The notes beneath the pieces were generated by a model. That model did not search any database. It saw only the letters and a list, made by a program, of their open reading frames with translations, and was not told the DNA's origin. Position numbers and translations under genes: made by a program. From the NCBI GenBank assembly GCA_964247055.1, contig OZ176052.1, forward strand, positions 11,408,001 to 11,472,000: DNA of 64,000 bases, written 5' to 3'. Origin of the DNA: Paragordius varius. Taxonomy: Eukaryota; Animalia; Nematomorpha. Shown here piece by piece: positions 20,449 to 25,257 of the stretch (within the stretch, counting starts at the first letter, position 1; each line of letters starts with the position of its first letter).

Positions 20449-23400
20449 ATGAGCAGACTTGCATTTCCGTTTATTTCTTTTGCTTTTAAGCGAAATTTGT
20501 CCACGACATGTGTAAAATCAAATCCTGTGTTTCTCCATACTTTTAGCCCCAAAAGTTTAATTTTATTAAAATATAAGGGTTTTATGCCGTCGCAACACCG
20601 CAAACTAATCCTGCACAATCAAGTCCAATCACCCCTAAACCCATTAAATCTGGAGCTCAAGGAAGAATTGTTGCCGTAATCGGTGCGGTTGTCGATGTCC
20701 AATTCGATGAAGGTTTGCCCCCTATTTTGAATGCTCTTGAAGTCCAGGGACGACCATCTCGTTTGGTATTGGAAGTAGCTCAGCATTTAGGTATATATTA
20801 TTGCATTTCAATTTATGTCTAATAAACATAATTTTTTATATATGTGCATGCATTTTTTACGCAATTATTGGGGGATCGGGGTCTTTCTTGGTCCAATCAA
20901 GTCAATTTCTTGACATTGGTTTTCTTTGGTAAGTTGACCGCTGGGACACTTTTCTTTTGTTTATTAACTTACAATTTTGATAAAATGTATCTATCCGCTG
21001 TGTTTTTGTATAACGTTTACTTAATTCCTTTCAAAAAAATTCCGGTCTTGCTGCATTTGTTTTTGAAGGCCGCTAAGAATTCTTTAGTTTCCTCCGAAAT
21101 TCAGTCTCTGTTGGAAGGTTTTTTTCGTCGACTGCTTAGTGATGATATATTATTTATTTTTTTGTCCAGGGGCCTATACTACAAAATTTATCCATAATTT
21201 CTGTGCATGGGGGACTATGGTCAATTTGCAGTTTATGCATGCTTCTAAAGTAGCTTAAATTCTTCTACGTTATTAGAATAAAAATATTGGGGATATGCAT
21301 TTTATTGCGATATCTAGGTTTACTTACCATGGTAATTTCTTTCAAATAATGTAGCAACGAATTCGTTTTTCTTATTCAGAAGTTTCTCCAATAGTCCAAT
21401 AGGGTATGAATACATGAGGCGCTTTTTTTACTTTTTTATTAGATATCTTATTGCTTTTTAGTGTCTTTTGGGAACTGACAGTATTTATTAGTTAATTTTG
21501 AATGAGCATGCAATGGTTTAATAAAAATTTTCTCTTTTAAAATATTTCAAGTTTATTTAATTATAGATTTTTTATGCTTAAATAATTGCTTATTTTATTG
21601 TGCGTTATTAAACATCTATTAAGGATGATCTATTTAAACCATCTACTTTGATACAAAATCCCTTGTAAATATTCTTTCTTTAATTAGGTGAAAACACTGT
21701 TAGAACAATCGCTATGGATGGTACTGAAGGTTTAGTCCGTGGCAATAAATGCATTGATACAGGCGCGCCTATAAATATCCCTGTGGGTGCCCAAACTCTG
21801 GGACGTATTATGAATGTGATTGGAGAACCTATAGATGAAAGAGGACCTATCAAGACTAAACAGTACATTTCATTAATATATATGTACAGTACCGTATAGT
21901 TTATTTTGGTAATAATTTATTTTATATTAGTATACGAAACAACAAATGTTAAATATTGAAAAAAATCGAAGCCTTTTGTTGGTGTTACCTTTATTGCCAA
22001 CAGTTTTAAAAATGAGCCTGTATTCATATCATTATTAAATAAATAATTTTACGCCTTCGTTAAAATAAATACCAAAATTAACTCTACGTCACTGTAATTA
22101 CTACCAAAATTTGATTTAAACATGCAAATGATGAAAAACCTTTATGCATAAATATATATCCATGAATGTTCTGACATCTCCACTGATATTTATATGTATA
22201 TCGTTTTAATCCATCATAACAAATTTGTACATAAATTGGTACTTTTATTTCATAGGACTTTGCCTATTCATCAAGAAGCCCCAAATTTTACTGACATGAG
22301 TGTTGAACAAGAAATTTTAGTCACCGGAATCAAAGTCGTTGATTTATTGGCCCCTTACGCTAAAGGAGGCAAAATTGGTATGTATAGATGTGCTTTAAAA
22401 AATTACATTTATTATTTTGTAAATGATGAAACCTTTAACTCTCTCTATGAAATCCACATTTGATTACAACTCAGTTCTGATATTAGTTATAACTTATATA
22501 TTTTACATCCAAATACAGTTCCATAAAATATTTTTGATAATCATACGTTTTTAGTAAGTGTGCAAAAATATGGGAAAAGTTCCTTTATGAAAGTAATGGT
22601 TATTAAGGGGAACTCGTTACTGCCTCAATTTTTCGATCATTAATAATTAATTTTAGTCTTTTGAAGCATATTTTATAAAAAATTTCAATAATAGGTTTAT
22701 TTGGGGGAGCCGGGGTCGGTAAAACCGTTCTTATTATGGAACTTATCAATAACGTAGCCAAGGCACATGGTGGTTATTCCGTATTTGCAGGTGTGGGTGA
22801 AAGAACCCGTGAAGGCAATGATTTATACCATGAAATGATTGAGGGAGGTGTCATCAGTCTCAAGGACGAGAGTTCAAAGGTGTTTATATAATTACTTACA
22901 AAATATCATTTATGTTCTTAGCAAAGTATACTTTCTTTAAGGATCGATCGTTTTCTTGAATGGAGGACAAATCACCGCTTTCATTGCAGATAATTAGACA
23001 TAACCTGTTGTTAATGTTTAAGTGAAATTAACAATACACTAACATAGACATGTGAAATTAATTGCAAAATATTTTCCATTATATTAGCTTTTTACCTTAA
23101 AATTACATCCATATCTATCACATCATAAAGAAATGTCAAATTGACTTTATTATAATCCGTCACTTCATAGTCATTAATCAGTTAAATATTGCCATTTTTA
23201 CAATATTTTAAGCCTGGTTTTGCAAAAAGTATATATTTCATCATTTATACAAATAAGGTCGCCTTAGTATACGGTCAAATGAACGAACCTCCAGGTGCGA
23301 GGGCTCGTGTCGCCCTGACTGGCCTTACCGTCGCTGAATATTTCAGAGATCAGGAAGGACAGGATGTCTTACTTTTTATCGATAATATTTTCCGATTTAC

Positions 23401-25257
23401 TCAAGCCGGTTCCGAGGTACGATTTTAGTACTTCTTTATAAAATGCATTTTCTTTTTTTCTTTCCTTATTAGTCAATTAATTTGCTCATTAATTTACATG
23501 CTATTTGGCAAAACTAGTCATGTATTTTTGCCAAAACTGTAATAAAATGCTTATATTCATTAATTTCAATGTGATGAAAAATCATGCACCACTCTAAATG
23601 CATAATTGTATGCATTATGATTAGTAAAACACAGTAAACTGACTATCATATATCTTTATTTTATTTTTCATTTTTTGTGCGGAAACAGTTTATTAACCAT
23701 AGATATTTTTGTAGGTATCAGCCTTGTTAGGACGTATACCATCTGCCGTGGGTTATCAACCAACCCTAGCCACTGATATGGGTGCCATGCAGGAACGAAT
23801 TACAACAACCAAAAAGGGTTCTATCACTTCTGTACAGGTATTTTGCATAAATATTTTTCAAGTAATTATATTAACACGAAAAAATGAATATTAATATTGA
23901 AATAGGTATATTCAGTCAGATTAATATATGATTATCACGAAAAATATCTAATTGTAAAAAATGATTTGCTTTTTGTTGAAATAAATGTTAAATGTGTAGG
24001 TAGTTGCAACAGAAAGTATACATTTAGGGTAGGGTGTATTTAATTTATTTAACCATCTGCTAATCTTTTTTTCATCTGGATCATATTTGTTTTTTCGTGA
24101 TAATCATTTATAAATTTACTGTATATTGATATTAATGTTTGATTTTAAATGTTCTTATAATAATATAAATATAAAAACCAAATCAGCTATACACATTTAT
24201 TGCTTAGAATGGAAAATTTTTAGTTATTTTATAAATTAGGCCATTTATGTACCAGCTGATGATTTAACTGATCCTGCTCCTGCCACAACCTTTGCACATT
24301 TAGATGCAACTACTGTCTTGTCACGTGGTATTGCCGAGTTAGGTAATCAGAAATATAAATTGATTTTAGTTATAATTTTTTCCTTAATGGATAAATTTAT
24401 CAAAGCAAAAATGTCATAAAAATGTAAGTTATATTGTAATAGTCATTGGTACAAAAGGGCCGTTGATAAATTTTGTTACTTTTTCATAAACTATTAAGCC
24501 ATTTTTTGGTTATCTATTTTAAACTTTCATTAATTTTTTTAGGTATATATCCTGCAGTTGATCCTTTGGATAGTACTTCACGAATTATGGATCCAAATAT
24601 CGTTGGTAGGGAGCATTATGATGTGGCCAGAGGTGTACAAAAGATTTTACAGGTTTTATTTATATTAAAAACGGTGATTTTTATGCGCTAATAACTTTTA
24701 TATTCATCGTTTCAAAAAATTTGTCTCTCTTGCGTTATATGTTTATACCTATTTTTTGTTGTTAATTATCAAGGATTATAAATCGCTGCAAGATATCATC
24801 GCCATTTTGGGTATGGATGAATTATCTGAAGATGATAAAATTACAGTGGCAAGAGCACGTAAAATTCAAAGGTATATATTTAATTTTACAAAATAAGTAT
24901 GTAAATAAAAGTAAATTTATACTCAAATATTAATTGTCTACAAATGGTATGATTATTAACGTTGTTTCTCATCTAAATTTTTTTAGATTTTTATCCCAGC
25001 CCTTCCAAGTTGCCGAAGTTTTTACTGGACATCCTGGGAAGTTGGTTCCCCTTAAGGAGACTATCAAAGGATTCAAACAAATTTTAAACGGTTTTTTATT
25101 TTTTATACTATTAATTTTTATGGAAAATATTTATTTATTAACATTTGTTTTTTGTTTAGGTGAAATGGATCATTTACCTGAAGTGGCTTTTTACATGGTC
25201 GGTCCTATCGAAGAAGCCGTCGCGAAAGCAAATAAACTTGCTGAAGAACAGAAATAA
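20449..25257 (+). CDS. ATP5F1B: Mitochondrial ATP synthase F1 subunit beta, 12 exons
   Basis: Approximate exons: 20449-20509, 20578-20790, 21688-21862, 22256-22377, 22695-22879, 23258-23416, 23715-23837, 24240-24342, 24543-24652, 24775-24871, 24988-25090, 25160-25257. Contains a presequence, [15 protein letters not shown], the P-loop [40 protein letters not shown] and [10 protein letters not shown]. Confidence 0.98.
20870..21180 (-). mobile_element. Probable decayed non-LTR retrotransposon (LINE) fragment in ATP5F1B intron 2
   Basis: The minus strand reads [17 protein letters not shown]..., resembling the WISEET linker between the endonuclease and RT of RTE-like LINEs. In-frame stops are present and GC is locally higher. 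Confidence 0.35.
22124..22190 (+). ncRNA. Box C/D snoRNA, SNORD60-like (predicted 28S rRNA 2'-O-methylation guide)
   Basis: C box ATGATGA at 22128-22134 and D box CTGA at 22183-22186. The guide TTCTGACATCTCC next to the D box pairs with conserved LSU rRNA GGAGGUGUCAGAA (one G-U pair), and the +5 rule gives the same G as human SNORD60 (from recall). It lies 69 nt upstream of the 3' splice site at 22255. Confidence 0.75.
22419..22484 (+). ncRNA. Box C/D snoRNA, SNORD81-like (predicted 28S rRNA Am guide)
   Basis: C box ATGATGA at 22423-22429, guide TTTAACTCTCTCT, D' ATGA, C' TTGATTA, D box CTGA at 22477-22480. The guide pairs with LSU rRNA AGAGAGAGUUAAA, and the +5 position is the same A as human SNORD81 (from recall). 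Located in ATP5F1B intron 4. Confidence 0.72.
23567..23646 (+). ncRNA. Box C/D snoRNA, SNORD32-like (predicted 18S rRNA Gm1328-equivalent guide)
   Basis: C box GTGATGA at 23571-23577, guide CATGCACCACT, degenerate D' CTAA, a perfect internal stem AATGCATA/TATGCATT, C' ATGATTA and D box CTGA at 23639-23642. The guide pairs with SSU rRNA (A/G)GUGGUGCAUG. It lies 72 nt upstream of the 3' splice site at 23714. Confidence 0.75.

Follow-up and report, generated by a model that had tools for sequence, protein, structure and literature searches.

Among the closest described systems are the box C/D small nucleolar RNAs (snoRNAs) that guide the methylation of human ribosomal RNA (rRNA), in which 28S Am400 is served by SNORD81, 28S Gm4370 by SNORD60 and 18S Gm1328 by SNORD32A/B (PMC11550049), the SNORD60 site being G4340 in the older numbering (PMC10520360; PMC3766210). 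Hoeppner and Poole, whose model is one of 'constrained drift', report that the host location of snoRNAs is unstable (PMC3511168). The vertebrate gene for the beta subunit of ATP synthase, ATP5F1B (ATP5B), is a housekeeping gene with intronic box C/D snoRNAs, but its cargo is SNORD59, which targets 18S A1031; human SNORD59A/B lie within ATP5B, and SNORD60 lies in another place (PMC3766210). Here, the mitochondrial ATP synthase beta gene is described in a window of 64 kb (the whole stretch of DNA analyzed, positions 11408001-11472000 of contig G000:C3 in a 110.6-Mb eukaryotic assembly), for which an earlier sequence-only reading had proposed three snoRNAs resembling SNORD60, SNORD81 and SNORD32. 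That reading had also named SNORD59 as the cargo of the vertebrate gene, in agreement with the human location given above. Judged from sequence, introns 3, 4 and 6 of this gene in all likelihood each encode one box C/D methylation-guide snoRNA (hereafter A, B and C), and these three are very probably functional equivalents of SNORD60, SNORD81 and SNORD32A/B (snR40, Me18S-Gm1358) in a host unlike that of vertebrates. The features concerned are:

21688..25257, + strand: host gene, ATP synthase F1 beta subunit, exons 3-12 (GT-AG borders, Pfam)
21863..22255, + strand: intron 3 (393 nt, GT-AG), host of candidate snoRNA A
22124..22190, + strand, ends approximate: candidate snoRNA A, with C box, D box and 28S guide
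22378..22694, + strand: intron 4 (317 nt, GT-AG), host of candidate snoRNA B
22419..22485, + strand, ends approximate: candidate snoRNA B, with C, D', C' and D boxes and 28S guide
23417..23714, + strand: intron 6 (298 nt, GT-AG), host of candidate snoRNA C
23567..23646, + strand, ends approximate: candidate snoRNA C, with C, D', C' and D boxes and 18S guide

The host gene was mapped exon by exon. Throughout exons 3-12, every border follows GT-AG and the reading frame is continuous, and the exon peptides, each scanned separately, match PF02874, PF00006 and PF22919, all of them ATP synthase alpha/beta families in Pfam. The P-loop exon has a beta-type sequence, and the gene is present in one copy in the genome. 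The sequence-only reading had placed a C box, a D box and an rRNA guide in each of introns 3, 4 and 6, and all of these elements are found where it placed them. A, B and C all lie on the sense strand of their host introns and show the arrangement of box C/D snoRNAs (RUGAUGA and then CUGA, 50-100 nt apart), with the D box 49-61 nt downstream. Each also carries an antisense element of the expected kind (at least 10 nt, ending 1-2 nt before D or D'), which forms 13 bp in A, 13 bp in B and 12 bp in C. The rRNA reference for these pairings was the genome's own rDNA (G000:C2), with an 18S of 1809 nt and a 28S of 3899 nt; complementarity to the species' own rRNA, whose absence the earlier reading had listed among the findings that would refute it, extends over 12-13 bp for all three guides. 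In animal intronic snoRNAs, a D box about 70-80 nt upstream of the 3' splice site is typical. The distance from the end of the D box to that site is 69 nt in A and 72 nt in C, and both values had been reported before; in B it is 214 nt, outside the 70-80 nt optimum.

If these introns are handled as snoRNA biology would lead one to expect, the RNAs would be made from the spliced-out introns of the highly expressed ATP synthase beta gene, and exonucleases would trim each intron down to the core particle on the C and D boxes, comprising SNU13, NOP56, NOP58 and fibrillarin. The antisense elements would then pair with pre-rRNA, and fibrillarin would add a 2'-O-methyl group to the rRNA nucleotide that faces guide position five, counted upstream from the box (the +5 rule), i.e., 28S G3293 for A, 28S A395 for B and 18S G1267 for C.

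In snoRNA A, the C box (AUGAUGA, 22128-22134) and the D box (CUGA, 22183-22186) are both exact, and a possible C' box (UGAAUG) occurs at 22163-22168. The guide (22169-22181) is a D-box guide that pairs with 28S 3290-3302 over 13 bp, 12 of them Watson-Crick and one G-U, and its predicted target under the +5 rule is 28S G3293. At -22.5 kcal/mol, this duplex is the best for that guide anywhere in the 18S, 28S and internal transcribed spacer (ITS)/5.8S sequences, and the string made up of guide and D box has no second occurrence in the 110-Mb genome. No convincing target for the 5' half of A was found in the genome's own rRNA. The consensus guide of SNORD60 (RF00271; human 28S Gm4370, formerly G4340) differs from that of snoRNA A at one of 12 overlapping positions, where a G-U pair is formed here, and, with AUGA taken as the D' box of the SNORD60 consensus, the +5 rule chooses the same G as in snoRNA A, namely the G before GUGUCAGA. 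In a cmscan search with snoRNA A, SNORD60 did not match even with the threshold relaxed to E<=10 (the SNORD60 gathering cut-off being 42 bits). snoRNA A would be a functional equivalent of SNORD60, not a demonstrated homologue, and may have arisen by independent origin or by guide transfer.

snoRNA B also has an exact C box (22423-22429) and D box (22477-22480), with a D'-like AUGA at 22447-22450 and a C'-like UGAUUA at 22461-22466. Its guide (22434-22446), which is read from the D' box, forms a perfect duplex of 13 bp with 28S 391-403 (-17.8 kcal/mol, the best for that guide anywhere in 18S, 28S and ITS/5.8S), and the +5 rule predicts 28S A395 as the target. A second guide region (22467-22476) has no convincing target in the genome's rRNA. 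The SNORD81 model (RF00136) is collinear with snoRNA B at 18.1 bits (E=0.36 in a 101-nt search), below its gathering cut-off of 50 bits, and the two line up in the C box, the antisense element before D', the UGAU-type C' box and the terminal D box. Their register agrees as well: antisense element, one-base spacer and D' box follow one another in the SNORD81 consensus exactly as do guide, spacer and AUGA in snoRNA B, and the +5 rule leads in SNORD81 (human 28S Am400, formerly A391) and in snoRNA B alike to an A that is followed by GAGUU. They differ as follows: the D' box of snoRNA B is AUGA and that of SNORD81 is CUGA, the guide of snoRNA B has U at one position where the SNORD81 consensus has G, and the host is ATP synthase beta here and GAS5 in the case of human SNORD81. 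The guide difference coincides with a difference in the rRNA, since the genome's 28S reads UUAAA where the SNORD81 consensus guide implies UUCAA. The U of the snoRNA B guide pairs with the species' own UUAAA, and thus the guide has followed the rRNA. In line with this, the 28S variant that the sequence-only reading had predicted for the species, GAGAGAGUUAAA, is present at 28S 392-403 of the genome's own rRNA.

In snoRNA C, the C box (GUGAUGA, 23571-23577) and the D box (23639-23642) are again exact. A D'-like CUAA (23594-23597) and a C'-like UGAUUA (23618-23623) enclose an internal 7-bp hairpin (23598-23615), which gives a D'-hairpin-C' arrangement. The guide (23582-23593) belongs to the D' box and pairs with 18S 1263-1274 over 12 bp (10 Watson-Crick and two G-U), a duplex of -19.9 kcal/mol that is the best for that guide anywhere in 18S, 28S and ITS/5.8S; guide and D' box together form a string that occurs once in the genome. 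The nucleotide predicted by the +5 rule, 18S G1267, corresponds to Drosophila Gm1358 and human Gm1328. For the second guide region, no convincing target was found in the genome's rRNA, nor was a second target in 28S, comparable to that of SNORD32A (Am1524), found for snoRNA C. Three Rfam families share with snoRNA C an identical guide core right before D', namely snoMe18S-Gm1358 (RF00533; 22.8 bits, below its gathering cut-off of 50), the plant family snoZ221/R21b (RF00300; 20.9 bits, below its gathering cut-off of 44) and yeast snR40 (RF01201; 16.3 bits). A difference from these families lies in the D' box, which reads CUAA in snoRNA C. The SNORD32 model itself gave no match to snoRNA C, and the SNORD32 label derives from the target site alone.

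Taken across the three, the guides pick the same rRNA nucleotides, in the same +5 register, as SNORD60, SNORD81 and SNORD32 do when these are read through their Rfam consensus guides. Target equivalence was judged from the Rfam consensus, with sub-threshold searches (E<=10) used to read the family consensus guides, together with the published site table. Because the guides serve the same conserved rRNA positions as SNORD60, SNORD81 and SNORD32A/B, A, B and C can be regarded as their functional equivalents. The likeness proposed in the sequence-only reading stands for guides and targets, with qualifications as to family membership: no candidate reaches a gathering score, the guide of A precedes the D box, and SNORD32 is not matched.

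The proposal that these introns encode methylation guides has to be weighed against several observations that speak against it. A terminal stem of 4-5 bp is lacking in all three, the 10-nt flanks giving -0.7, +1.1 and +2.2 kcal/mol, no better than shuffled sequence. No match in the whole 64-kb window attains an Rfam gathering score: the cut-offs lie at 42-50 bits, and the best scores, seen at E<=10, come to 18-23 bits. In B and in C, the D' box is one position off CUGA, and A has no recognizable D' box. Additionally, the SNORD60 guide precedes D', in the 5' half of the molecule, whereas the guide of A precedes the terminal D box. A terminal stem is, on the other hand, typical of box C/D snoRNAs without being obligatory, and many intronic snoRNAs do without one. 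The boxes are short, and rRNA complementarity of at least 12 bp is common when no boxes are required (476 cases in the window and about 450 in shuffles), which might suggest that box-like motifs and complementarity simply co-occur by chance in AT-rich introns. This explanation is nevertheless highly improbable. A loose scan for RUGAUGA with CUGA 40-110 nt on and an rRNA duplex of at least 12 bp between them, covering both strands of the 64-kb window, returned exactly A, B and C, and the window contains only seven such C-D pairs in total. The chance control based on this loose scan was too permissive, with at least one match in 58 of 200 shuffles, and was replaced by a strict scan in which the duplex must also abut the D box or a D' box with one mismatch. 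With boxes and adjacency required in this way, three matches were obtained in the window, whereas 1000 dinucleotide-preserving shuffles of the 64 kb averaged 0.079 matches and in no case (0/1000) contained three. Moreover, the three matches lie on the sense strand, in introns of one gene, and have the guides of named families, and all three guides fall on known conserved methylation sites, a coincidence that does not depend on the statistics of boxes and duplexes.

If the elements are of snoRNA origin, they could still be decayed or silent copies that are no longer processed, their sites being unmethylated or served by other guides. The absence of terminal stems, the degenerate D' boxes, the Rfam scores far below gathering and the orphan second guides would all be compatible with decay, but we consider it unlikely, as the C and D boxes are exact and the guides of 12-13 bp are intact, including the change that tracks the species' 28S. 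Neither is there a sign of a better source for these guides, since the guide-plus-box strings of A and C are unique and a genome-wide search with either model, SNORD81 or SNORD60, yielded weak matches without boxes and no better copy. The placement of A and C is also the optimum for intronic processing. Alternatively, A, B and C could be genuine box C/D snoRNAs whose main role is other than rRNA methylation, such as acting as a chaperone of pre-rRNA folding or serving targets of the second guides. Room for such a role would be left by the regions with no convincing rRNA target, namely the second guides of B and C and, in A, the 5' half. Orphan second guides are, however, common among ordinary methylation guides, and the primary guides of A, B and C obey the +5 rule at sites that are methylated in other eukaryotes; a different main role thus has very little probability. 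Three intronic methylation guides, one in each of introns 3, 4 and 6, are by far the more probable account.

The guide pattern of snoRNA B also occurs outside the window. It has a second match in a scan of the 110-Mb genome, at G000:C2:8029360. In the surrounding sequence (G000:C2:8029314-8029378, + strand), the string antisense to 28S 391-403 stands 38 nt after GUGAUGA; GU comes next, then AUGA, and no CUGA was found near it. In this register, the +5 position would face 28S A393, 2 nt before A395, and the two sites resemble the human pair served by SNORD26 and SNORD81, Am398 and Am400. A scan of metagenomes with the same guide pattern retrieved nine loci, none of which adjoins ATP synthase beta motifs. 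In the metagenome contigs L020, L024 and L026, a C box is accompanied by the same 12-nt string antisense to 28S, one spacer base and CUGA, and these are probably SNORD81-type snoRNAs of other eukaryotes. Contigs L022 and L023 have AUGA as D', like snoRNA B.

The ATP synthase beta gene of other lineages was approached by a protein word search with the open reading frame that covers exon 4 and its intron flanks. This retrieved 1208 exon-sized fragments from many eukaryotes, in which both flanking intron positions are widely shared; none of the 1208 resembles the intron-coded parts of the reading frame. Twelve ATP synthase beta loci of other eukaryotes were then fetched, starting from 11 of the fragments. 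The three guide cores are absent from 11 of the fetched loci, and no match at the Rfam gathering score occurs in the eight loci that were scanned. On one fetched contig, JAAUXT010053288.1 of GCA_013332975.1 (L018), three near-identical box C/D snoRNAs lie in three successive ATP synthase beta introns, with ceN54 (23.1 bits) and snR76 as their nearest counterparts:

3212-3280 of L018: box C/D snoRNA, C box at 3218
3566-3635 of L018: box C/D snoRNA, C box at 3572
3942-4011 of L018: box C/D snoRNA, C box at 3948

With SNORD59A/B in human ATP5B and the ceN54/snR76-like snoRNAs in L018, the gene hosts different snoRNAs in different lineages. For the locus studied here, the relocation of the guides into one host gene can reasonably be inferred, as the sequence-only reading had done. 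More tentatively, and with our doubts slightly outweighing our confidence, ATP synthase beta could have served as a snoRNA host repeatedly, with a turnover of its cargo between animal lineages; the SNORD60-type guide at the D box would point to re-invention or transfer rather than to transposition of a whole snoRNA gene.

Another suggestion of the sequence-only reading, that RNA cargo keeps the host introns at 300-400 nt, finds no support in the rest of the gene. Introns 2 (about 897 nt), 5 and 7 match or exceed the host introns in length and have no detectable C/D snoRNA, and in each host intron a snoRNA with a 70-nt spacer accounts for no more than about 140 nt. The remaining introns, 8, 9, 10 and 11, measure 200, 121, 115 and 69 nt, respectively. 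A search for further C/D snoRNAs in the gene's other introns, SNORD59-like ones included, revealed none that was convincing. Two of the introns contain inverted repeats. In intron 7, a foldback of about 206 bp that resembles a miniature inverted-repeat transposable element (MITE) occupies 23915-24120, with arms at 23920-23944 and 24091-24115 that are 92% complementary; it has 70 matches in the genome (on both strands, several of them overlapping) at about 66-97% identity. In intron 3, an inverted repeat of about 212 nt (21885-22096) lies upstream of snoRNA A and is single-copy in the genome; its arms (21885-21918 and 22063-22096) are 34 nt long, 82% complementary and separated by 144 nt. The remaining mapped parts of the gene are:

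20578-20790 (approximate), + strand: exon 2 of the ATP synthase beta gene, 5' border tentative
22880-23257, + strand: intron 5 (378 nt), no detectable C/D snoRNA
23838-24239, + strand: intron 7 (402 nt), no detectable C/D snoRNA, foldback repeat inside

On the 5' side of the ATP synthase beta gene, minus-strand open reading frames at 19010-20351 look by eye like exons of a Mpv17/PMP22-type membrane protein, with short introns between them. Elsewhere in the genome, the rDNA array at G000:C2:1811658-1995730 comprises at least 12 copies of the 18S gene on the minus strand, mostly about 9.3 kb apart; several gaps between 18S copies measure 12-46 kb, and some units may be interrupted or incomplete.

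snoRNAs A, B and C belong to an ordinary kind of gene and leave views on how snoRNAs work unchanged, their modest interest residing in the host association and in the D-box placement of a SNORD60-type guide. For the organism, they would add three annotated rRNA-methylation guides to a poorly studied, animal-like genome, together with three predicted modified nucleotides. The guide of snoRNA B, with its change that tracks a species-specific substitution in 28S, would offer a natural test, on a small scale, of whether guide and target covary as their pairing rule demands. For the families concerned, the locus would represent a clear case of snoRNA host-gene turnover, in which guides and sites have been kept and the host has changed, and in this respect it fits 'constrained drift' (PMC3511168).

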